Source: Dimorphilus gyrociliatus
Taxonomy: Eukaryota > Animalia > Annelida
Assembly: GCA_904063045.1 (NCBI GenBank)
Contig: CAJFCJ010000013.1
Coordinates: 473,954-537,953, forward strand
Direction of reading: 5' to 3'
DNA length: 64,000 nucleotides
Part shown: positions 41,162 to 60,350 of the stretch, one piece after another
Layout: the number at the start of each line of letters is the position of its first letter
Position numbering within the stretch: the stretch's first letter is position 1
Translations under genes and position numbers: made by a program
The notes under the pieces: generated by a model
The model's database searches: none
Seen by the model: the letters and a program-made list of their open reading frames with translations, nothing else
What the model was told of the DNA's origin: nothing

Positions 41162-44100
41162 TCATTTACTATCCGCTGAGAAATTAACTTTTTTTTGCTT
41201 TTCCTCAGTTATAGTATCACCCTGATTTCTTTCATTTTCCTCTTTTGCCGCTCTCTCCTGTCTAGAATCACAAACCAATTGTAGACAAGTAGCTAAATCA
41301 GTCGGTTCGAGCTCATTTTTATCTGTTTTTAATGAAGGAAATATTGAATAATGTATCATAAATACATCAACATTTATTATTACTAAAATGAATGAAACAC
41401 GGAGAATTAAATGGTTTATTAAGAAAAAAAATCATGTTCTTTTCTTTTCTAAATGTAATTTTATATTTTTAGTTTTTTGTTCCTGTCCATTTATTAATAA
41501 CCTTTAAGGCTTCTTCTTCAGTAGTCAATCTTTCAAGGACTTCGGTCGAAAGATTTACTTCCTCTTGTCCTATTACCTTTACATAAACCTTTGCTAAGGG
41601 AACTAATTTAGATTCAATAAGAGTAATATTTGCATTCTTTAAAATTTTTTTTGGTGGAGTAGTGTAAAGCTGAATTTCAAATTTCCCAGCAATGCATTTA
41701 GTTATGAAATTATAAACTGAATCTAAGCTCTCGGAAGGTTTAAAACAAGCTTGTAGAATTAAGCGATTAGAAAAGACAAATCGAATTATTGCTCTTTCAT
41801 ATATAGAAAATCTAGAATTCATCACTTCTTGTCTAAACTTTTGAGTTAGCAGTGGCTGGTTATAAGCATTTTCCACTGATGCCCGTAAAGCTTCCATCAT
41901 TTTTCTAACGTCATTGACAGTAACTTCGAAAAATTCGTCCGATTCTTCCAGTGGTTTAAAATCCGGAGCTTCAGCGGAATTGTATAACTTGGTTTCTCTA
42001 TCTAATAATTCGTCCACTACGCTACTCTCCTTATTATCAAGTTTAGCTACTGTAGGCTCACGTGCAACCGTAGTAGCATCCTCATCCATTTTAGGCTTTT
42101 TTTGCACTGGATCTGAAGTTATTTCTGATTCTGATGACTGTCTACTAGTATCCACTAATACTTGGGAATTTTCTGCAGTTAAGTAACGGATAATTGCCCT
42201 GCCTCCAAATAGGCCTAAATTTCGAAGTTGGGTCTTCTTAAGGGTCTCTTTACCAGCTATTCTCTCGGTTATATAGAGACAAACGTGATCTGAATCTTGA
42301 GTTTGTGCGAATACTCGTCTTACATCGTCCGTTGTTTTAGCTAAGCTTTCCTCTAGAATGTCCCATAAAGTCTTCTCAGGCCCGTGCTCTTGAATAGTTC
42401 GACTACCATCTTGAAATTGTATTGCTACCATAACTGGTTCTTCCTTTCTTTCTCCATCTGATTCAACTAGTTCCAACTTTGAGCGGTTGGGCAATCCGGA
42501 ATATCGAAATGATAATGTCAGATCAAGTTTCTTCTTTCCGTGCTTCAGTATATATTGACTGGGAGGTACAAATTTTTGCTTTAAACAAACTTCTTCCAGA
42601 ACTTGAAGCATTGAGCTTTTTGCAGTTACTTTTACTCTTTGCCAACGCCCATTCGGGCAGACGATTTCAACAAATGTTGACATTACTGATAAGATACTTT
42701 TTGGGAAATATTTGTAGATATGTTCCTTCAGAGTTAGTTACAGATACAAAAAGAAACTCAATGTTTTCCGTTGACAACCTCTTTAGCAAAATATGGACAC
42801 TTACATAGCGGATTGGTATTCGATAGAGAAAACTACCGGAAACGCGACTGAATGTTTTGTGATTTTTTTGCGCGAAAATGTCATATGTTTTAAATACTAA
42901 TAACTTGCCTATAACAGCCCAAGCTTCTACACCATCAATAATAGGATTCATCCAAGTTGATCTTCTCTTTCCAGCAAAGCCAGTGCTTGGTGGCGGGTAT
43001 AGCTCAAAAAGTATTTCCACTATTTCATGCTTTTTGAACAGTGTTGTTGGCGTTAGATTTTTACCTATATTGAAAAAAAATTGATATTAGATATTTTTGT
43101 TTGACTAATTAACAAACAGTTATCATATCAATATTTACCTCGATATATAAAATCCAAGGCCTCTCTAACCTCAGGCAGCGATGGATATAAGTGACACTCT
43201 TTTAAAAAGTCCATTAATGAGCCTAACTCAATTTCTCCATTGAATTGGAGTTTATCAAAAGTTTGTTCATACTCTGTATAAAACAGAAATATATAGAAAT
43301 CATTAGGATAAAAGGCAGCTAATTAAAAAAATTATCAACTTCTTTTAGCATCCATGAAACGATCAACCTCGGATAGATTGAAAGGGGTTTTGGGCCTTTC
43401 AATACCATGACGCACTTGAATTCGACGGACTAGAGCTTTATACTGAGAAGTGAATTTTGACCAATCACTTGCATGACTTTGGCATTTTCTTCTTAATTTT
43501 TCCATATTACGTCTTAAAAGGAAACCTCTAACGGTACTTTGAATTTTTGTAGCTCTTTTATTGTATTCTTTAACATCTAAATGTTTTGGTGGATTGAAAG
43601 CGCTGCAGGCAAATATCCAAGTTAAATTGCATATAATTCAAGACAACTGAATTTAAATAAATCTTACTCGTATACTTCAACATGTGGCCCAATCCTAGAA
43701 AGTTTATCCTTCTTTGATTGATTTTCATTTAAAAGCGCTTTTTTAGTATTTTCTACTTTAAATTGCCGTAACTTTTTCTTCTCTTCAAGCCATTGTTGAT
43801 ACTCTCCCTCCCAATCGGATTGATCATGATCCGAGTTTCGATTGTTTATACCTTTTAATCGCTGTTTATGTGCATAATATTCTCTGTACGGAAATGTAAT
43901 TATTACAATTCTTATTGTAAACTATACAAAGAGTAGATACTAACTTTTCAGAATTAACTTGCGCCAATCTAGCATCCTCTCGTTTCATTCTAAATTCTCT
44001 TCTTAAATATAAATACCTTGATCTTGTAACATAACCACGGAAGATTCGTTGTATATCAACAGCTGCTTTGTGTCTTCTCGTTTGTTCATTAGCCAAACGC

Positions 44101-47100
44101 TCCTCGTTGACGTTATTAACTATTAAATAGTGAGCGATTGGCCGGCCAGAACATTTTTTCGAGCTCACTATTGATGATTTTGATTTTATAGTTGATGAAG
44201 ATAATGGGCGTTCCCCTCTTGAAGATGCCGAGTTCATTCTATTGACGGAATGTTGCCTTTCGGTTAGCTGCAAGCTTTCTGCCCTTGCAATTAGTTGTTT
44301 TTCGTCCATATCAAATTTTGCTGTTGGTACTTTTATTGAATTATAAACATCCTGTTGAGTGCTCCAATTTTCAGATGAATTATGAATTTTAAGGTAAGAT
44401 CCTGAATGACTCCTGTAGAGCTGTCCCTTAGATTTTGGAGTTCTATAAACTACATCAGAAGTTGTTGGCCTTGGCATGAAGCGCATCACATGAATACCTG
44501 GTGGAATTTCCCCAGGCTGTACAATCTTTCTTTGATCAGGCTTGGGGGAGGAATACTGTTTGGGTGTTGATCGTCTAAGCGTAGAACCCATTCGAACCTT
44601 CTTGTTGAGATTTGATTTTTTATTACCGGAACCAACAATTTCCAACCTCTCCTGTCTTGGTAACGGAAGTTTATCGGAAGGATTCATAGGTTGTCTCATT
44701 TTTCCTGGTTTCTTCAAACATCCTCCTCTCGTAACCTGATAATTATTCAAATCGGGATAAGGGCTTTTCGACTCAATTTTAGGAGAGGGATTTGGAAGGG
44801 GATTATGATCAAATTTTACGTGTTCACTGCCCAATTCCAAAGTAATTTCTTCTTTTAACTTTTCCGTCTCTTCCATAATTTCATTCGCTTCCTCCTCTTT
44901 CCACTCAGCCGTCTTTTGTTATGTAAATATTTTGTAAAGAATGTAGTAAAAGAATATGGTAAATTCTGTGTACCTCATAATTGTCATGCCATTGTTGATC
45001 ATTCGTTACTACAAAGTGATCTGTGGAATTCGGTACATTCATAACCGAATCGTGTCCTCTGTGAGAACAGTGATAATCACAACAGATAGAATGAATGAGA
45101 AGATAAATGCTAAAGAAAAAAACAAGAATAAATGGGGTACAAACCTCTCCTCTTGAGTGTTAATTGTTCTGGCACTTGGCAACCTGTCACCAACTGACAA
45201 AAAATGATAGATTAAGAAAGGATATACTAGATAAGTTAATACAAAAGTAAGAAAAATCTATTATACCCAACATAGACTTTGGGGCGCAAAATGATACGAA
45301 TTCCGTATGTTGAGGAGGTTGATTATCAATTTTTTTCATTTCCTATTTTTTACAAATTTATTTACTATTCGATTTTTCTATTGTCAATAAATAATTAATT
45401 TCGATATTTTTCTTACATGATATCCAAAATCAGAGTACTTTATCCTTTTCCTTCTCTTTTTGGACTTTTTTCCTAAACGTTGACTTGTTAGTAAAGTTTT
45501 AGAGATATTATCTTCAATAATAGTTGTTGTATGACTAGCGGCTTGACTCATCCTTTTATTCTTGCGGCTTGGCTGTGGATTATTTAAAATTAATAAAAAA
45601 TTTTCATATCTCCTTATCTTTTTCGTAATAATGAATGTGGACTATTTTAACGAGTAAAAAACATCATTATAAGCAGAAGAAAATATATGTATGAGAAGAG
45701 AAAAAATTTCTTTACCAGACTTTCTAATTCAAAGTTCAAGGCCTTCCGTCTTTCGGTAATATCCTTATTTAGCGAAGTTTGAAAGTATTAGTAAGTTTGT
45801 AAGAAAGATAGGAAGATGCTTTTTCATTAGAAAAACTCACATCATCTCTCGTCCAACGCTCCCGTGGTGTAGTGGGAGGCACTCTAGGTCGAATACTTCC
45901 TGTTGTACTACCCTGGCTCCTAAGAGATTTTCGTTCTTCGTCCAATTTTCTTACATAAGTATGATTTTCGAAACCTCTCTGAGAGCCTGATTTTATTGTA
46001 AATTTTCCAGATGAGGTATCCGGTGTTATTATTCCTCTCCAATCAACATAAATATCACCATCATTGCCGGAGATAGCTCCCGTACGATTGAAACTATCGA
46101 TGTTGGATTCTCTGTAAATTTGATAAAGTAGTTTTTTTTTTAGATACCAGAGTTTAATTTTGAAAATGTTTGCACTTTATGGAATAAAATAGGAAATTTT
46201 GTAAAATTAAAAAATATTTAAAAAAACAAAGTAATAATGGAAAAAAAAACAAAGTAAAATACAAAAAATAATATCATAATTAACTCGAAAATGCAATCGA
46301 AATAATAAAAAAATAAATGAAGATGGAGAATTTTTTCAAGGTATTTCTCAAATTTATTTTTGCACTCTCAATAACTTACGATCTTTCAAACGCGACCATT
46401 TTTTTTATCTTCTTTTTCATCCTACACTCATAATTTATACTTAATTAAACCGAATTCCAAAATAAACATAGCATAAAAGATTTTAATTTGTCACCTACCT
46501 ATCTGGTTCTGGTGTACAATGAGGTGGAATAGGATCCGATGAACTCATAGGACGACTACAAGAATTACTACTCTCTGATTTTGTCTCGTCTTTAATTGGA
46601 ATTTTCTCCAAAAGCGGCATATGGGAGTTTTCTCCCGCCATATCCTCTCCAACAGAATCAACAAGATTAACAACAGTTTTCAATTTAATACAATTTGAAG
46701 AATTATCTTTCTTTTCTATCTCACTACAAAAGTACACATTTCCATTATGATTATCATAATAAATAAAGGAGTCATTTTTATAATTAACCTTTTATTCACT
46801 GATTTATTAGCCGATAATAATCGATTTCGATCGTTTTTTCTTTGTGGAAAATAATTTTCAGTTTGAATTAAAAATTCAGTCAAAGGTTTCGATACTAATT
46901 CTCTTCCGGCTGGTTGGATATCATCTATATTCAATAATTGATTTAATAATAAATTAAAGAATTGAATAATTGATTAAATACTTTTAGTTGGTTGTACAGA
47001 AGCAAAATAGTTAATAACATCGCTAGTATACTCTTCATTCCTTATAAAACCGTCTGTATTTGGCTTTTGTAATTCGTCTACAGATTGTTAATTGATTATA

Positions 47101-48835
47101 TGTTGTTTTTATGGATTTAATATCAATTGTCAATACCTAAAATTTGCATATTTATATCCATATCTTTAACAACTCTTTCTAGTTTATTCATTTGAGCGGA
47201 TTTTCTTTCACTTGCGCTAAGAGGTCTTCCACTGGCGTCCGAAGCTGTGAAGTGTAACGGATATTTATTGACGAATAATGAATTAACTTAAAAGCTAAAA
47301 ATATTTTAAATAACGGAGAAAAAAAATACAAAAATAATATTCATTTCTTCCGTTTTAATCTATTGTGATAAAACAGATATTTATGAAAAAAGTCTAGCGG
47401 AAAGAGAAGAGATAAAGATTGAAGAAGATTTATTAGAGAAACGCTAAAATACAACTTTTTCAAACATTTCTTACCGTCTAAGCCGGAGAATGTTACTCTT
47501 TTTACTTTTATAAAACAATTCAAAGTTATTAGATGAAAATAAAAAGGGGGAAAATCGGTTATATAAAATTAATTTATTTTGACAAACAATGTAAACTTTT
47601 TTTTTTGTTAGTAAAAACTTTATTGTTGTTAACATTACAAGTAAAAATAAAGTAAAACGTACCTTTTGTTTTTGAGATTTGTTTATGTGTTTCGTTTCTC
47701 ATTGCGTCCATCTCTGATATTTGACGAGCAAGCGGGTTGACTAGATGGGAAAGCGGTAATATTGGCCTCTTTACCAATTCAACTTCTTGTCTATCATCTA
47801 TCCTCTCGGAATTAATAGAAGATCTTTTATATTCCGCAGTGCTCGGCCTCGATTCTTGTTTTATGAAAGATGAATTTTCTGAATTTGTCTATAAAATAAA
47901 GTAAACAATTATAGCGAATAAAACTATAAAATAGATAACAAACCGCAATTGTTGAAGCGGATTGAGGTCTACTAAGCCGTAAATCTTCCAGAAGAGCTTC
48001 GGGAGATGTTTTAAAGAGAAAAGAAGTTTTAGATTTTGAGTCATTCTCAGTCGTGACCTTATCTCTACCAAAACGCTAAAAAATCAAATACAAAGAGAGT
48101 GAAAAAAAAACTTATTAGGTTCTCCAATCTTCTATTTGGCAGATAAATATTACCGGTTTGGCGTAAAGAACGTGCCTATTCCCCAAATACCAGCCATATA
48201 TTTTTCTAAAGTTTGATATTTGCAGTTTGTGCTCTAATCTGTTTCCGAGTAAAGAAAAATCATTAATATTAATAATCTAGGGTGCTAAAGACTATAGATC
48301 CATTTAAAGATTTCATAGCAGAGTTATTTAAACCTATTAAAAGATTAGTAATAAAGACGAAAGCTTTCGACAAAAGGGAGAATATCTATTGATTGTATTG
48401 TTTAGTTGTGTTGTTATTTGTTTGAATCTTGAAAGATTAGAGATTAGCAAAGTATTTCTTAAGGAAGATTACTTACCCTAGAGTCTCCAGCATCATTCTG
48501 ATGAGCATATAATAGAAGTTACTATCATGATGTAGTTGATCACTTTGTAGGAAAAGTTATATAAATTAGTTTTAACAACTTTCTACAGCATAATTTATTT
48601 ACATTGAATCCTTTGGTGTGCCTGTCAAGTGCGCAAGTTCTATTTCTCTAAAATGCTGGTTTATTTCTGCATGCAATTCTTTAAATTCTTTAATTTTCAT
48701 TAGCTAAACGTGTTTAAATTATGAATATACAATGCTAGTGTAAAAGAAGAAAAAGACTACTTTGCACGGTTCCAATCTCTTCAATCCCCGGCTGATTGTA
48801 TTTATTCTATCCAAAACAGATGGTGGAGCGGGCAT
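41162..48835 (-). CDS. IQCM: IQCM-like IQ-motif protein with long N-terminal extension, many exons; final intron is GC-AG (42908-41323)
   Basis: IQ motif IQRIFRGYVTR. Blocks DWRGI, RRIQVRHG..NLSEVDRFMD, ECHLYPS, KHEIVEILFELYPP, STWMNPIIDGVE and LQLVCDSRQER match recalled human IQCM blocks in order. Continuity of all 5' exons into one gene is inferred from manual phase matching. Confidence 0.72.
41469..42683 (-). CDS. ASPSCR1: TUG/ASPL (tether containing UBX domain for GLUT4), single exon, 404 aa
   Basis: N-terminal UBL (PNGRWQRVKV..LSFRYSGLPNRSKLELV), second UBL, FFEVTVNDVRK and extended UBX (IRFVFSNRLILQACFKPSE..YTTPP..LVP). Confidence 0.92.
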   Translation of the reverse strand: MSTFVEIVCPNGRWQRVKVTAKSSMLQVLEEVCLKQKFVPPSQYILKHGKKKLDLTLSFRYSGLPNRSKLELVESDGERKEEPVMVAIQFQDGSRTIQEHGPEKTLWDILEESLAKTTDDVRRVFAQTQDSDHVCLYITERIAGKETLKKTQLRNLGLFGGRAIIRYLTAENSQVLVDTSRQSSESEITSDPVQKKPKMDEDATTVAREPTVAKLDNKESSVVDELLDRETKLYNSAEAPDFKPLEESDEFFEVTVNDVRKMMEALRASVENAYNQPLLTQKFRQEVMNSRFSIYERAIIRFVFSNRLILQACFKPSESLDSVYNFITKCIAGKFEIQLYTTPPKKILKNANITLIESKLVPLAKVYVKVIGQEEVNLSTEVLERLTTEEEALKVINKWTGTKN

Positions 48836-48970
48836 TTTAGTTGACAAAAAAATATATTAATTTTCATATATTGATTGTCAAAACTCTTTTAATGTGTTAT
48901 TCAAAAAAACAGCTCTTCAAAGTAAAAACACTCCACACTGCTCTATTCGGTTTGCCCGCCATTTTGATTT

Positions 48971-48984
48971 GTTGTTATGGAAAT
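48971..48984. promoter_or_regulatory. X-box (RFX)-like GTTGTTATGGAAAT upstream of the IQCM-like gene
   Basis: Near-match to the GTHNYY-AT-RRNAAC X-box consensus, ~140 nt upstream of the ATG at 48835. Confidence 0.4.
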
Positions 48985-49531
48985 AGCAGTTGTCATACTT
49001 CCGGATAAAATTGTATTCTCTTCGATAAAAGTTTATTTAGTCTCTAGTATTTGACAATGTACAACCCTAAAATTTTCCAGACTAATGTACGATGATTTAG
49101 AAGGAAACTTCCGGTTAATTCCCGCCCTTAGAACAGTGATAACATTGATAAAGTTATCTCTTCCTTTTAAACATTTTCATTCATCAAATATAATTGTTCA
49201 AACCCTATCTAAACTAATTTTGTATGCCCTATTGCATAGATAATAGTCTTATCTTCAACTTTCTTTTGACATAAAATAAATACAAGTGAGAATTAGCTAC
49301 CGAAAATTCTTTATTTATTTATGATTATCTAAAGAATAAATAGTGTATTGTTGAGAAAGGACGAATAAAAGAATATAAAGGTAATTTTTATTCATTTATT
49401 TATAATTTATTAATTTATAGATGAAAAAAATGAGCAATTGGAAAGAGTCTTGGTAGAAGTTTTTAATTAGTAGTTGTAGAATATTCAACACAACAATTAG
49501 AAAAAGAAGCTTTCAAGTAGATAACGCTAAG

Positions 49532-52500
49532 TCAACATACTGAAATTAAAAGAAACTTAACAAAAGTGTAACAAAATAAATTAATTTTAGCTTACCTCCT
49601 GTAAAGGCATTGTTGGTTCGTCATTTTCGTTTTTGTTCGCTTCAAAACATTCTATAATGGAACATATTATTAGAAATTGGTAATTTTCTTTTTTCGACAA
49701 CTAATAATGTAATAAACCCTAAAACGTAGAAATAAAATAGAAAATAAATCTCACCGAATGCTATTTGAAGCTTGATCAAACAGTGAGCATAGCTGGAGAA
49801 ATAAATACGCCCTTTTTCGTCCGCAAATTTCTTAACAATATCCTCATATACCCGATTACTTAGGCAATAACCTATATAAATATTTCATTGTATATATGTA
49901 TATATATAGTAAATAACTGTATTTAAAAACTTACCACTTGATTGCAACGCTTCCCTTAATTCGTAATTATCAAAATAGTCGCTCTTATCAATATCGAATT
50001 TATCAAAGTTTGTCTAAATTTTTCAAACAACAATTATTAACGAATAATACCTTTTATTCATTATATTTATAGACTTTATTACCTTCCAATTGTCTAAAAG
50101 TACCCATAATTCTTGGAATTCGTTGATATTTAACGTCCAATTGCTGTCCGTCTGGTTTAAAGTGTTAAAGGTTAATCTTTAACTAAATTGTTTAACGTTT
50201 TAACTTACGTCTTTCAAAGCGATTAAGGATTTACAAATCTCAGTATCAAAATCTGGCATTTTCTTGTCTAATTAACAAAATATTTAAAGATAATTTACAA
50301 TAATTACAGATAAGATAACGACGTACGTTTAACAAAAGTTTTGTTGAGTAGTTTCTTAAGTTCAAAAGCGTCAATTTGGTCATCGTCTTGAGCATATTTC
50401 TTGAATTCGGCTTCGGCCTGGCGCCTAACGGCTGCTGTTAGTGGTCCAGATACATCTGGAGAAGAAAATGACGTTGTTGGCATATCGGATGGTCTGAAAG
50501 GGAATAAAATTTTATTTAAAAAAAAACGACTAATTAAATACGAACTTCACACTTGACGGTTTTTCAGAAAAGACTCTTAAAAGGAATTTCCTTTCTTGAT
50601 TAGGTTCGAATGTTGACGGAATAACAATATATTCTCCTGGTTCTAATAAATGCCTTTGACAAACATCTCTTAAATTTATATAGGACGACGTAACAACAGG
50701 CCTATTGTTTGAAAAAAAATCCTTTTTCAACGTTCCACAATAATCCGGTGCCTAGATAAAAGGTAATTTGTTATAATACGAATAAATAATCAATATTTAT
50801 AAAATACTACCTTGAATATTTCATATCCTATAGTTATATTACCTCCAGTCTCGTTTGACTGTTTTGAATTACATATTTGAGTTAACGAAACGATAATTGT
50901 TCCTAATTCGTCGTCATCGTCAGCATCCTCCACTTGAATTCGAAATTGGGGATTTATATGATAAGTTTCTAATAATGAAAAAGCATTAAATGACTTTTAT
51001 TAAGAATTATATGAAAATTATCTAAAGTTTACTTTTAAAATTCCTACATCCTCCGGCCGAAACTCCTTTCTTCCAGGCAGAATGTATAGAAACTGAGTTC
51101 CATTTCATTTTTTCATTAGTATCCATTATATCACCAATATTCCAGTGACAGATTTCTAATCGTTCAAAGTTAGAAATGAAATCCTTGTAAGACATCCAAA
51201 ATTCCCCATCGGCTTCAAAGGTAAGACCCAATTCCTGCCTTTGACGGGGTTCAATGGAGTTCCATTGACGTGATTGATCGCTCCATTCACCTTTCCATTC
51301 GAACTCATTGCCCCATGGATTTCGAATTCTAACCAAGTTAAGATTACCATCTGAACTTTCAAGCTAAACGAGTTTACAGTTATACGAAAACGGCTAATAA
51401 ATTGGCTTAGAGGATAAACATACCTGTTTAACATCAGTAATCGAATAGGCATGTCCCTTTAACAAACCGTTTTCCAATTTTTCCTCAACAACATCAGGAT
51501 TTGCCTTTTTTGATTAAAATAGATATATTAGATATATTTTATTAGTCATAAATAATGTTAACAAACATCTATTGAACAGCCGAGTAAAGATCCGTGTTCA
51601 ATTGATTTGAACATTATGTAGAACAAGTCATCTGGTATTTTAGACTTGAGATTGAATCTTTCAACGACTCCTCCTGTAAGATCGGTCATTGCATCGCTAC
51701 TCTGACCTCCAGTTAACGATTCGTAACAGCCGTATATCCTGTTAAAAAATAACATAATCATTCGTATAAGGGCTTTACATGGATGAAAGATTTTACTTGG
51801 CAAAAGCCTTTTCTACGAGAGCTGACCAAAATTCATCTTCGGATGATGAATGCATGTAAATCAATCTATTCTGATAAACAGGTAATTTATCATCAACGCA
51901 AATTTCTACCCATTTACCATATTGCCAAACATTAAAACGGAATATTCCTGAATAGTTGGAATGGAAATTTTGATTGGGAGGAACAACTCTATCGAAAAGA
52001 CTCCTCTGATTCGCCACACTTGAAAGCGCTGCCAGAAGCCAACAATCTCCGAGAGAGCCTTGCTTCACATCGAATCTTGATACTCCTTCAGAGATAAAGC
52101 GTGGATCTCTACATAATTCTCTTGGTCTTTTCCACTCCAAGTGTCTACCGGAACCTGAATGATATAGTGAATCTGCTGTAGGAGGAAAACTTGCGTCTCT
52201 CCACAATTCATTGTTTTTATGGCAATCATTCTTCAAAACTTTAAAATTTTGCTCACTTTCATTTGATCTTTTCTTTGATTGTTTCTTCTTATCATTCTTC
52301 CTTTTTTTACGCCTTTTTCTATCATCTTCGGCGTCTTCTTCCGAATCGCTTAAACCAAATAGCTTTCTAAGGAAAGATGGTAATTGTTGTTCATGACATT
52401 CTTCTTTCTGTATTGGGTCATTCATTGCTATTGAACGTTTAACTTCAGGTACTTTTTCGAATCTAACGCTTCTTTCATCGTTTTTGGAAGACAGTAATCT

Positions 52501-53731
52501 GTTAGAAGTTGGTTTTTTAGGTGTTGCTGACTTTAAATTAAGTTCTTGGATAATTCGTTCAGCATTTTCTACTCCCCAGAAGTTAATCTGTGTTCCTGAT
52601 TTATTGACAAATTTCATTGTAGGCTTACTATCTTCTAACACTTGTTTAGAATGATCAGTTCTCGTTTCAAGCTCATCCTCATTTTTTTTTGGATCAAAAC
52701 GGCTCAATCTATTAGATAAGGATGGTTTTTGAAGAGGTAGATTGTCGGACTTTTTAGGTTCCAAGAGAGGTGAATCTGGCTTTCTATAAGTTCGGGGAGT
52801 TTTCAAGAGTACGTCTGTGGACAATGATGGGCGGGGAGACTGACTTCTGTAAGATGTATTACTATATCTTGACCTTATGTCATCCAAATCGGTTAAAAAC
52901 TCTGAAGATTCTTCAACATCTTCAAACTTTTCATCGTATCTCTTTTCATTTTCCTTTGGTCCTTCCCAAACAACTGGAGGCTCGTAGTGACTATCGTACC
53001 TTTGACTGAAACGAGAATCATGAGACAGACGAGCTGGTAAATCTTGATATTCATCCTTTCTAGATAAAAAATAGTTATCTTCATCGCTACCGAAGTCGAC
53101 CATCGTTGGAGTGAAAGTGCTACTTCGCATTGACGGCATTTGATATTTTGGTCTGGAACTTTGTGCAAAATAATAATCTAACTCCGAATCGAAAGAGTCG
53201 ACATCGTCATTATCCGTGTGAGAAATTTCAGAAGAATATAGATTACTCGATTCTTCAATATCATCTAACTCTTCATCGTCCATCCTTTGAACTACAAAAG
53301 TCTTCATACTAATTTTACTTACTTCGCTGGAGATTCTTTAAAAAAATACAAATAAATGGAAATATTATAAATTGAAGTCTTTCAAATTATTAATTTTCTT
53401 ACTTATGTAAAGCAACAGCTTTAATTGTTCGCTCCCCTGGTTTTAACGTGAATCTACCTTTATATTGGAATGTTACTCCCCTTCCGGGAGTTGTTGATAA
53501 CGGGTCGGGAATTGATTCGTCGGTCGTAAAAAACATTCGACATTGCGGAGTGTCTGTAAAAATAATTCATAAAGTGTAAATTATATAGAAGAGAAAGGAA
53601 TATAATTAAAACCTATTACCAGTTGAAATATCTATATATGTTGCATTTGTTATGCAAGTTGGATCTCCTATCGCATCAGGAGTCAATGCAACAATCCTAG
53701 GTGCAGACGGTCTTCTGCCAATACCTGGCAT
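49532..53731 (-). CDS. Calpain (CysPc-C2-like-penta-EF) with N-terminal Fn3-associated/CHB_HEX_C-type domain and long disordered linker
   Basis: Catalytic triad intact: QGSLGDCW, GHAYSIT and RIRNPWG. Also SAGGCRN, NPQFRI, PSTFEP and penta-EF exons ending FLLISVC*. First exons encode FFTTDESIP..FQYKGRFTLKPGERTIKAVA. Confidence 0.9.
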
Positions 53732-53790
53732 CTTGAGGATTCAACAAAATAATACAATCCTTTCTTAGTATGATAAAATCTGTTTACAGA

Positions 53791-53804
53791 GTTGCTAAGG
53801 AATG
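53791..53804. promoter_or_regulatory. X-box (RFX)-like GTTGCTAAGGAATG upstream of the calpain
   Basis: Strong GTTGCT half-site 60 nt upstream of the ATG; second half is degenerate. Confidence 0.4.
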
Positions 53805-54176
53805 CGATGGCACTACCAGTTTTCTAAAGAAAAAAATTCTTCCCATATGATTTTAAAGGTTTTCTTTTTCCACCCAAAATAAAACTTTAATAAAATGGAA
53901 AATTGTATTTTATTAAATGAATATATTAATATATTTGTAATAGACTTCATGATATACTTATTTTAATAATTCCTCTTTGAATAGTATAACTAATAAGCAT
54001 TGTTTTACTCATTTAAATTGTTAGCTAATAAAGATATAACATTATTAGAAATTTTTATAACAAAAGCATGTATGGAATTTTTCACTAATTGTATTTAGCA
54101 CAAGTTTTCTATTAATAGTTTTTTTGAAAGCATTAAAAATTGATTGGTCACTTTCGAAAGCAAAGTAATAAGAATT

Positions 54177-54192
54177 ACAATAGGTGGCGCTG
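54177..54192 (+). promoter_or_regulatory. CTCF-like motif ACAATAGGTGGCGCTG between calpain and SETD1
   Basis: The core AGGTGGCGC matches the CTCF consensus and is an isolated GC island in very AT-rich intergenic DNA. Confidence 0.45.
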
Positions 54193-54538
54193 GTTGAAAT
54201 ATAAAATATTTTGTAATTCAGATGTCACTATATCATATTTAAAGTTCTCAAATTATTTTTAAAAAAATTTTCGTATATTAAATAAATTACTAAATATTGC
54301 TGATTGTATAAATTTCGTGAAAATCCACTCTAATTTTTTTTTATTTTTCAAAACAAGAATGATGGGATACAAAATGGCCGTTACGAAAAGTGAACCAAAC
54401 TGCTAAACTATATTTGAAGGAAGTTTTTGTCAGTTTCTAGCGATATTATCGTTAGATTTCTGATAGAAAATCTAACGGAATTAGTTTGCAATCTATAATA
54501 TAGCTAAATCACCAAAGTATATGGCAGAACCTTAAATC

Positions 54539-57500
54539 ATGGCAAATGCCGATTACAGAGTCAATGCTCTATGCCCAATTGACCCGCGCATGGATCCACG
54601 ACGTTATAATGAAGCATACAGAGGTAAGAAAAACGTAAAAGATGGAAAATATGACATAAATGTTGAATTTTGCCTCAGGTCGTGAAGGTGCAAACGTGCA
54701 GCGCCCTAAGAAAGAAGACTTTATATCTTTTAAGCTAATAAAAGACCCTTTTATTCATAAATGCGAAGCTAAAGTTTATCGCTACGACGGGAAACCTATA
54801 GAAGTATGTTATACTCTTACAAATTTTAAACTTGGAAAAAGCAACTAACCTTTTAATTCAATTACAGAACCAACCACATGTCGAAGTAAAAGATCCAAGG
54901 AAACGTCTAGATTACCTAGATAGGAAATTGGCCTTCGCTCAACTTGATGTACTTCTCCCCGTACCAATGCTAAAAGTATTTTGACCAAAACTAAATATCT
55001 GAAAAATATTAATCAACGTAAACTTTTTAAATAGGAGGATGACTGCTATGTAGGCCCTTTGCTCAGGAGAGAAGTTACTATCGTCAATCTGAATAATAAC
55101 ATTGACTTAAAATTCCTGAACAATATGGCCCGAGATTATAAGATTTTGAATTCAAAAATATACTTTCATCCTAATACAGGAAAACATCTTGGAATTGCCA
55201 AGGTAAGCGAAAGTAAATAAATGAGAATAGTTTGTTTACATTTAAGTTAAAATATTACAGATTGCATTCTCATTACTTTGTGAAGCTCAGGATTTTGTAG
55301 AAAAATTTGATGGAAAACCCCAAATGGGTCTAAAAATCCACGTATTTTTTGACCCTAAAGGTATAAATGTCAGTCATCTATTATTTAAATTCTAACCTCG
55401 ATTATTTTTCTTTCTTTAGGGAAAACTAGACAAAATTTAATTGTGGAAAAAATTAACGAAGTACATCAACCAGCAACAGCTGCCCCTGTTAAAGAAGCAA
55501 AGACCTCCCCTCTTAATACTTCCCGCGATCATTCTCTCGAGAGAAAAACATCCCAAACAAAGGATGTACAACAGCAATCAACTCGAGATCCAAGATCTTC
55601 TAGGTCTAGCACTGATACTCTTCAAGAGGATAACTTTTCCTATCGGGACTCATACAGATACTACGAACGTGATAGGCGAGATACCAGACGATATAACTAT
55701 GATAACAGAAGAAGAGAGAAGTACAATAGAGGCGACAATTACTATCGAGATGATTCAGCTAGCCACAAAAGAAATTATCATAGAAACGACTCTATTAAAG
55801 AGCAAATTGAACAGCCACCACCCCCGGCTGAAAATGCAGTTGAGCCCGATAAAGATATTGAAATGGATCAAGCCGAACCATACACAGGTTATAATGGTCA
55901 AGAAGGCATAGAAGACGGAGAGCTTGAAGACGACGAAAGGACAGCCAGTCTTGATACCAGAATAAATATGCTTTTGGGTGTTGATCACGAAGAACCTGAA
56001 AATGGTGAAGCTTGTCACTTAAATATTGATCAACCCGCCGTTGAAGAGGAAGTGCTAACTACCTTTGAAGAATCTCAAACCAACGACCAACAACTTGAAT
56101 TGCCAGAAAGCTGTGATAAGACAAATGATAATGATGATAGAATGAGCCTGTCGAGCATTTCAAACGGAGACGAAAAGATTGAATTGAATGACGCGTGCTT
56201 AGACGGGGTAATGCCATTTTTTTCATTTTCTCTTGAAATAATTTTCTAAACAATAATCATTCTATATAGGAGAATAGAAGTGTTTCTCTTTGGGAACACG
56301 AGAGGCAGAAGCAAATTATGAAGAATGCTCTAGAAGGTACAACTAATCATCTTCGAGACGTGCTGTATACCGATGTCTTTCGAAAATCAATACAAGTATT
56401 CGGATTTGATGTTTTTGAAGAATGGTTTGAAAAGTCTAAAAAAGCAGCGAAAGTAAGATTAAAATTGCGTGTCTTTTCCTCTCTCTCATTTTCTATCAAA
56501 TATTCCAAATAGAAACCAGATATAGAAAACGATCAGAAAACTGTTGAATCGACAAATAAAACAGAGAGCGATACTGAAAAACATGATACGGAAAAGCCAA
56601 TAACAACACCTCAAATTCTTACCAGTGAAAATCTTTTTGAAAATATCGGTAGTGGAGGTTTCCTCGGTTTACGAGCTGGTATGCCAAAAATGAGATCATT
56701 TAAAGTTCCAGTAAGTAAATCAAATTTTCGTTGAAACTTAAAATTAAATATATTGCTTTTACCAGAAAAAACCAAGAGCTCCGTCTCCAACTGTAACACA
56801 GCCAAACTCGAGAAAGTCACCATCAGGTACAGTTGTTTTTTTATTACACTGAATTTAAATTAACTAAATGATTAATTTTTTTCAGAGAACTCAGAAGATG
56901 ATGACGTGAGTGATGAAGATTTTGTGACCAATAATCAAAAGAAACCACCAAAACGACGGGAGAAAATACGGTATAGTTCTTCTTCCCTGTCGGAGGAGAG
57001 TGAATCCTCGTCTAGTATCAGTAGTGACGAAGGACCAAATGGCACACCTATTGCTTCCGATTTCGATGCAAAGTCCACCGGCTCCGAAGTTGATTTAGAC
57101 GCAGAAATTGATATCAACAAAATACGGTAGGTACAAAAAGAGGAAACAATTCTTTCACGTTTGTTCGTGATTTGATCAGTGGTCAACTTAAAAGGAAAGG
57201 TTCGGTCGATGCGAAGGAAGAAGAGGGATGGCAATCACCTGTTTTTAGTTCATCTCGACAGGAAAAACTATCATCTAATCGAGGGAGGGGAAGAGGAAGA
57301 AAGACTAACCGACGGTAATATTGCTCAATTTTCGTTACGATAAGCCAACAATATAGTCTTATTTCCAGAGATTCCTCTCGAATCGACGAACCAATACCTG
57401 AATTTAACTTAAAGAAGGAACCACAAACACCTGAATTTGATATTCCTGACAATAAATCATTTTCTGAAAGGGACGCCGTCCTTACCTTACTCCAAATAAG

Positions 57501-58964
57501 TAAGAGTGGTGGTGGGACAATAAAGCAGGATGATAATTTCAATTCCACTGCTCAATCCGTTACTGCAGAACATAACTATTTTAATTCAACACCTCCACAA
57601 AAAAAACATACAGGAATATTGCCAACTTTCACTGATATCGTTGAGAAGGAACCTGTAGATAAAAAACTCGAAGAAATAAACGACTTCTTGGCGGCTGTTC
57701 TTCACGATCATTGTTATGTTTTACAAAGCACAGTAAGTCAATATATACTCCACTCTTATTAGTCACTGTTAATCTTTTTTTAATTACACCAGCCAGCAAA
57801 ATCACCTGGAAAGACACAATTGCAGTCTCCGCCCCCTACATCTAAGTCAAAGAAGATATTGTCATCTATTTCTGCTCAAGTTCCTGCCAAGAAGCAGAAA
57901 AGAATGCCCAAATCAAAGCCAAAAGCGGTTAGGTCAATTAACTTTAGCAGGAGGAATGAAAGTGAAGAACAAAAAGTGCTCAGTAACATATATGCTGACG
58001 GTATGGACAGCGAAGATATAAAACTATTAAAAATAGCTTACGACCAAATGGTTGTATCTGGTGATCACAAAGAGGTTCTTGAAGGAACTCATTGGGCTGA
58101 AACTCCAGCAACAATTGATCCACAATTTAATAAATCTAGAAAGCGTGGTGCTAAGATTGGACTTAGTGCCAGAACACAACCAGTCAGTATTTTTAAAGAA
58201 GCGCGTAAGAAGAAACAGGCTGATATAACTCAGCAATTGTCTTTCAGAGGTTTACGTAGCGTAAGTACTCTCTATTTTCCGAAATAAACAAAACAGTCTA
58301 TATTGTACTTTTTATACAGGTCTCTGATAATCGATTAAACACCATAGAACGCGATAGCCGAGCCAATCCTGTTCAATCTAGAGAAGCTCGTCTTGAGAAT
58401 CGAAGGCATCTAAATGCGATCGGAGAGTATGATTTCGATTCGGATTTGTTCAAATTTAATCAGCTTAAGGTGATGCATTTTTTTTGCATTTATAATACTG
58501 TTAAAAATACTCATTGGAAACAATGATTACAGACGAGAAGGAAACGCTTAAGATTCGATAAATCAAGTATTCATTGCTGGGGTCTATTTGCCGATGAACC
58601 CATTCAAGCTGAAGAAATGATTATTGAATATATTGGAGAGGCAATTAGATCGTCCATTGCCGACTTCCGTGAAAAGAAATATGCTCGCGAAGGTATAGGA
58701 TCAAGCTACTTATTTCGTTTGGATTCTGAAATGGTTGTAGATGCGACGAAGAAAGGAAACTTTGCGAGATTTATCAACCATTCGTGTAATCCGAATTGTT
58801 ATGCTAAAGTAGTAACAGTTGAGAGCTCAAAAAAAATAGTCATTTATTCCAAGAGAAATATCGATATTGGAGAAGAGATCACTTACGACTATAAATTTCC
58901 CTACGATGATGACAAAATTAAATGCCATTGTGGATCCGCGCAATGCCGTGGTTTTCTAAATTAG
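54539..58964 (+). CDS. SETD1: Set1/COMPASS H3K4 methyltransferase
   Basis: N-terminal FKLIKDP..KVYRYDG, RRM, N-SET with Win-like SARTQP and [12 protein letters not shown] domain ([36 protein letters not shown]) and post-[16 protein letters not shown]. Confidence 0.95.

Positions 58965-59407: not shown

Positions 59408-60350
<943 letters not shown>

Follow-up and report, generated by a model that had tools for sequence, protein, structure and literature searches.

Calpains are defined by the attachments to their protease core, which decide where and when cutting occurs, and a survey of calpain architectures describes 24 partner domains in 41 arrangements, among which Fn3_assoc/CHB_HEX_C_1 is not listed (PMC3563603). 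The PEF calpains, reported from animals alone, respond to activation by calcium with N-terminal autolysis (PMC5650170). These classical forms usually carry a short N-terminal anchor, and the nearest to the protein described here are the invertebrate CalpA/CalpB-type and calpain-9-like enzymes. An accessory module placed before the catalytic CysPc domain, as in the present case, is likewise found in PalB/CAPN7 (MIT), SOL/CAPN15 (zinc fingers) and TML/DEK1 (membrane spans); however, in all of these the modules are other than Fn3_assoc/CHB_HEX_C_1, and the head considered here sits on a PEF calpain.

The second system that has to be kept in mind is DZANK1, a ciliary protein with zinc ribbons and ankyrin repeats that localises to basal bodies and microtubules, and whose link to NINL and dynein was mapped, outside the N-terminal domain, to the ZNF_RBZ zinc ribbons at residues 244-317 (PMC4617706). 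In the model of a June 2026 preprint, a DZANK1 dimer, with a globular dimeric density, sits beside LC8 on the A-tubule of the transition-zone doublets, and binding of LC8 by DZANK1 has been reported; none of the sources on DZANK1 assigns a contact with tubulin, or any other contact, to its N-terminal domain. The same Pfam families, Fn3_assoc and CHB_HEX_C_1, also include domains of bacterial glycosidases and surface proteins, where they are extracellular accessory modules, whereas the protein treated below is an intracellular-type protease.

Within the window (the whole stretch of 64,000 nucleotides that was analysed), a minus-strand gene of 15 exons, with its ATG at 53731 and its stop codon at 49513-49515, encodes a protein of 1107 residues in which a head, a linker and a calpain follow one another. 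Its parts are the following, where X2 is a public RNA run and L001 a related locus, both taken up below:

53732..53784, minus strand: 5′ untranslated region of 53 nt; the X2 contig reaches 53784, and the upstream translation has in-frame stops
53620..53731, minus strand: exon 1, which from the ATG on has 37 codons (residues 1-37) and one further base, with the first strands of the head; joint 53553/53620 present in the transcript
53403..53553, minus strand: exon 2, residues 38-88, core of the Fn3_assoc/CHB_HEX_C_1-type head, homologous to DZANK1 residues 38-86
53335-51796, minus strand: exon 3, 1540 nt, which includes the putative end of the head, the linker and the catalytic Cys
53290..53335, minus strand: start of exon 3, residues 88-103, putative last strand or strands of the head, nearly identical in L001
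52204..53289, minus strand: linker, residues 104-465 (about 360 residues), acidic and rich in serine; Pfam recognises no family in it
52555..52599, minus strand: linker island SGTQINFWGVENAER, residues 334-348, identical in both species
52267..52320, minus strand: polybasic patch of the linker, residues 427-444, a K/R-rich patch retained in L001
51033..52203, minus strand: CysPc, spanning, together with the introns, the end of exon 3 to exon 6; triad Cys 519, His 676 and Asn 700
50546..50968, minus strand: C2-like domain III, exons 7-8, Calpain_III at 5.6e-09 and 1.4e-17, profile positions 20-137
49513..50493, minus strand: PEF (penta-EF-hand) domain and stop, exons 9-15, EF-hand_6 at E=7.6e-05 on exon 12

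The body of this protein is, to judge from its domains, a complete classical calpain of the calcium-activated type, and its activity is predicted. Peptidase_C2 of Pfam is recognised on exons 3, 4 and 6 (4.6e-54 for the exon-3 translation, 5.6e-13 and 2.5e-27), the Cys-His-Asn triad stands in the usual motifs, and three PEF calpains (P0011, P0038 and P0018) align with it at 40-43% identity from about residue 430-450 onwards, ending only a few residues short of the C-terminus. The CysPc domain is ~50% identical to named calpain-A/B proteins, the nearest named calpains coming from many phyla. Thus, the Pfam matches, the end-to-end alignment with PEF calpains and the triad residues bear out the preliminary description, which had read the downstream exons as an intact CysPc-C2L-PEF calpain. 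Triad, C2L and PEF are shared with the classical PEF calpains; what sets the present protein apart from them is that, in the place of their usual short N-terminal anchor, it has an extension of 465 residues that includes the head.

Whether such an extension belongs to the same gene as the protease is a matter that the transcripts decide. Two public runs, X1 and X2, were compared with positions 48800-54300 (5501 letters), and it has to be considered that their contigs give splice joints, neither RNA levels nor true transcript starts. In run X2, a single spliced contig of 3383 nt, with zero mismatches, joins all 15 exons across 14 introns, from 53784 to ~6 nt beyond the stop codon; its 14 gaps are CT..AC on the plus strand, that is, GT..AG for a minus-strand gene, and they include the joints 53553/53620 and 53335/53403. 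The first two introns, GT..AG as well, are of 66 and 67 nt and lie in phases 1 and 2. The untranslated 53 nt with their in-frame stops make 53731 the first usable ATG, and no extension of the frame further upstream is left. The joined translation of the three spliced 5′ exons agrees exactly with the one that had been quoted at first, and the claim that these exons and the calpain form one transcript is established by the mismatch-free contig that spans all the joints. The fusion of head and calpain is therefore real, and it is one expressed gene, beside whose head-bearing RNA a head-less isoform with an internal start may exist. By eye, the N-terminus of the protein has no obvious signal peptide.

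The other run, X1, is a coral metatranscriptome, and it contains short spliced pieces of the calpain gene that are 95-100% identical, so that either the animal of the window or one very closely related to it lives with corals. A second contig of X2 overlaps only the conserved calpain stretch 51189-51228, where the depth is doubled in that bin, and its flanks are unlike on both sides; it is probably the transcript of a paralogous calpain.

The surroundings of the gene are those of a very compact animal genome, with a gene every 4-5 kb and 33% G+C in the window, and calpain introns (49513-53784) of 52-103 nt, 14/14 of them GT..AG. Divergent from the calpain, at 54539-58964 on the plus strand, lies a SET-domain gene (its SET/post-SET end at 58617-58964), the two starts being ~750 nt apart; beyond it, at 59408-60144 on the minus strand, there are small exons of an ARF/ARL-type small GTPase with the motifs GLDGAGKTT and WDLGGQ. 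Several kb downstream of the calpain and on the same strand, at 43866-44876, an ORF of 336 residues bears an IQ-type motif, IQRIFRGY, near its end.

The head itself, a small domain that would be rich in beta strands, occupies residues 1-103, roughly 100 residues at the very N-terminus, and its family assignment depends above all on exon 2. The Pfam scan of the head ran exon by exon, exon 2 being about two thirds of the domain, and its 49-residue peptide scores 17.2 bits (E=0.0055) with Fn3_assoc (PF13287) and 16.9 bits with CHB_HEX_C_1 (PF13290), the corresponding exon of L001 reaching 22.2 bits (E=1.5e-4) and 20.5 bits; all of these exon-2 scores lie below the Pfam gathering cut-offs, which are 23 bits for Fn3_assoc and 22 bits for CHB_HEX_C_1. 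Exon 2 spans positions 8-45 of the 59 of the first profile and 18-56 of the 67 of the second, and as it covers only part of either, the remainder of the domain would be found in exon 1 and the first ~15 codons of exon 3. Exon 1 alone has no match in Pfam, the ESM Atlas or the PDB, nor has exon 2 in NCBIfam. In a feature search of the ESM Atlas, the clusters nearest to exon 2 all belong to the Fn3_assoc/CHB_HEX_C_1 families, with a top score of 0.90 and 173 shared features; these nearest clusters include the bacterial domains mentioned above.

The likeness to DZANK1 comes from a different direction. When a profile made from exon 2 of the two species was run against 177,635 distinct PDB sequences, one match appeared, DZANK1 residues 38-86 (11xu chain G1), with E=0.41, which is weak as an open search, although, since DZANK1 had been named before any search, it amounts to about 2e-6 for a preset target. 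No bacterial PDB chain was matched by this profile, whereas DZANK1 was; the two-species profile was needed for this, as phmmer with the single exon-2 peptide gave two chance-level matches only against the PDB. Residues 38-86 of DZANK1 themselves score 44.8 bits with Fn3_assoc, over profile positions 7-45, and they pair with residues 39-87 of the head at about 35-39% identity over 49 residues; the Smith-Waterman score of head against DZANK1 is 66, while shuffled sequences give 22.7 ± 4.2 and 0/5000 of them reach 66. The head thus stands at an equal distance from the first methionine and covers the same Pfam profile positions in both proteins. The parallel with the DZANK1 N-terminus that had been noticed in the preliminary description is in this way upheld by the PDB profile match, by the 44.8-bit score and by an alignment that surpasses its shuffles, and the data support homology of the head with the N-terminal domain of DZANK1, as a domain of the Fn3_assoc/CHB_HEX_C_1 kind.

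What is shared with DZANK1 is, as far as the domain content tells, a domain and not orthology. The scanned downstream pieces match only calpain and EF-hand families in Pfam, with no ZNF_RBZ and no ankyrin repeats, and the idea that the gene is a DZANK1 ortholog is ruled out in the absence of zinc ribbons and ankyrin repeats, the remainder of the present protein being a calpain, with an alignment to PEF calpains from residue 428 onwards.

An independent view of the same gene is offered by a second species. Among the best 150 of 5594 matches from 1.84 billion cluster representatives, the sole close relative of the exon-3 ORF is P0001, with 68% identity, and its contig, L001, is a 15.5-kb stretch from a related species that is syntenic with the window: there, too, a divergent SET-domain gene lies upstream of the calpain, and the same three 5′ exons are present with the same splice phases, exon 1 being 78% identical. 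The head is 83.5% identical between the two loci, with a dN/dS of 0.086; the linker (residues 104-475 compared) is 66.6% identical, with 0.109; and the N-half of CysPc is 72% identical, with 0.128, the dS between window and L001 being 1.3-2.2 and that of the head ~1.3. The dN/dS of the head marks it as coding and as strongly constrained, no less so than the N-half of CysPc, and chance is excluded by the fact that L001 has both head exons, in the same phases and at that identity. The possibility that the X2 contig is a chimera of the transcripts of two genes is ruled out by this same constraint, by the conserved splice phases, by the uninterrupted frame and by the shared exon 3; the end of the head most probably shares its exon with the linker and with the catalytic Cys, which speaks against an accidental joining of two genes.

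In the data reached by the protein searches, the head-calpain is found in these two species only. Two candidates for a deeper ortholog were rejected, P0002, which sits in a large, unrelated genome, and P0032, whose N-terminus is unrelated and of low complexity. The full-length protein of 1107 residues is absent among the matches of either protein search, a junction pattern of the spliced protein had no match in metagenome contigs, and the scan for related loci with exon 2 gave 599 pattern matches with 0 confirmed.

The search for the head in other calpains had the same outcome. Neither Fn3_assoc nor CHB_HEX_C_1 is found at E<=0.05 in any of the calpains with long N-extensions (0/43), neither PF13287 nor PF13290 appears among the best 120 matches of the word search, which for the query used covers proteins of 282-898 residues, and a profile of the head, compared with 268 fetched proteins, nearly all of them calpains, matches only P0001. 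In the literature, no paper naming both calpain and Fn3_assoc was found, and the three papers that name DZANK1 and calpain together carry titles on unrelated topics. The architecture, which the preliminary description did not recognise among animal calpains, is accordingly absent from the calpains examined and from this literature, in a census that is partial; within such a census, the combination of a DZANK1-type head with a PEF calpain is supported as a new one.

Between the head and the protease lies the part of the molecule that is most particular to this lineage. The preliminary description had a linker of ~350 residues running in frame to the calpain, and about 360 residues are indeed found before CysPc. 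Only 25.5% of them are hydrophobic; the sole Pfam match on the exon-3 translation is Peptidase_C2; the ESM Atlas gives no look-alike, at low recognition; neither the PDB nor DZANK1 has a detectable match; and the linker has no homolog in these searches besides P0001. Nevertheless, DSFDSELDYYFAQSS, DLDDIRSRYSNTSY, SGTQINFWGVENAER and the polybasic patch form islands whose sequence is the same, or almost the same, in the two species, so that the linker would be lineage-specific and mostly unstructured, yet no bland spacer. In SGTQINFWGVENAER, an SGTQI sequence with a TQ core has a loose, putative likeness to the TQT-type anchor for LC8, the dynein light chain.

If these elements are put together, the gene would have to be understood as a classical calpain to which an N-terminal head and a linker have been added, the head probably serving, by docking or by self-association, to fix the location of the protease. 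The head would form a folded module that sets the place of the enzyme in the cell, and the conserved islands of the linker may bind further partners. As classical calpains trim their own N-termini, calcium could release or inactivate the head-calpain: its arrival would bring about autolysis at the N-terminus, by which the enzyme would either be cut free of its anchor or switched off.

As to where such a place might be, DZANK1 suggests one answer, and the tethering of the protease to cilia or centrosomes by the head, an analogy with this protein, is speculation. According to it, the head would attach the protease to microtubules of cilia or centrioles, at the transition zone or basal body, and calcium-triggered proteolysis would occur at the ciliary base. 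The homology of the head with the DZANK1 N-terminus, the presence of DZANK1 at basal bodies and on microtubules, its modelled dimer on the transition-zone A-tubule next to LC8, and the conserved SGTQI island with its presumed likeness to an LC8 anchor would all agree with this; however, the NINL-binding ZNF_RBZ domains are absent from the head-calpain, no source has the N-terminal domain of DZANK1 touching tubulin, and the linker is without detectable likeness to DZANK1, so that on balance we consider this location rather unlikely. A wider version of the same idea, in which the head is a portable address label that brings several calcium effectors, calpain included, to the doublets of the ciliary base, where they would make up a local station of calcium response, also seems to us improbable.

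A further alternative is that the head controls activity and not location, as a dimerising or autoinhibitory module that replaces the pairing of PEF domains or adds to it. The modelling of DZANK1 as a dimer, with its globular dimeric density, would fit such a role, as would the regulation of classical calpains by their N-termini and by autolysis (PMC5650170), and the head is more tightly constrained than the N-half of the catalytic domain. Against it, the dimerisation of DZANK1 is not pinned on a given domain, and the ~360 residues that separate head and CysPc make a better tether than a lid, which leaves this alternative improbable in our opinion. Finally, it is very improbable that the head-bearing RNA is minor or aberrant and that the working calpain begins within exon 3, with the head adding nothing, for although contigs are silent on levels and starts, and exon 3 does contain in-frame methionines (e.g., residue 98), the head keeps a dN/dS of 0.086 at a dS of about 1.3, the splice phases are maintained in the second species, the frame is unbroken, the end of the domain shares its exon with the linker and CysPc, and the sole transcript contig across the region includes the head.

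For the calpain family, a conserved DZANK1-type head on a classical calcium-sensing calpain would be a new attachment, and for DZANK1, a protein now placed on the microtubules of the transition zone, the head-calpain offers a handle on the N-terminal domain. Should the head be no more than an addition peculiar to this lineage, the known calpain architectures would gain one modest item; if, as in the preferred reading, the head is a docking module, it would provide a simple test system for the DZANK1-type domain, and could link calcium-triggered proteolysis to a defined site of the cell.
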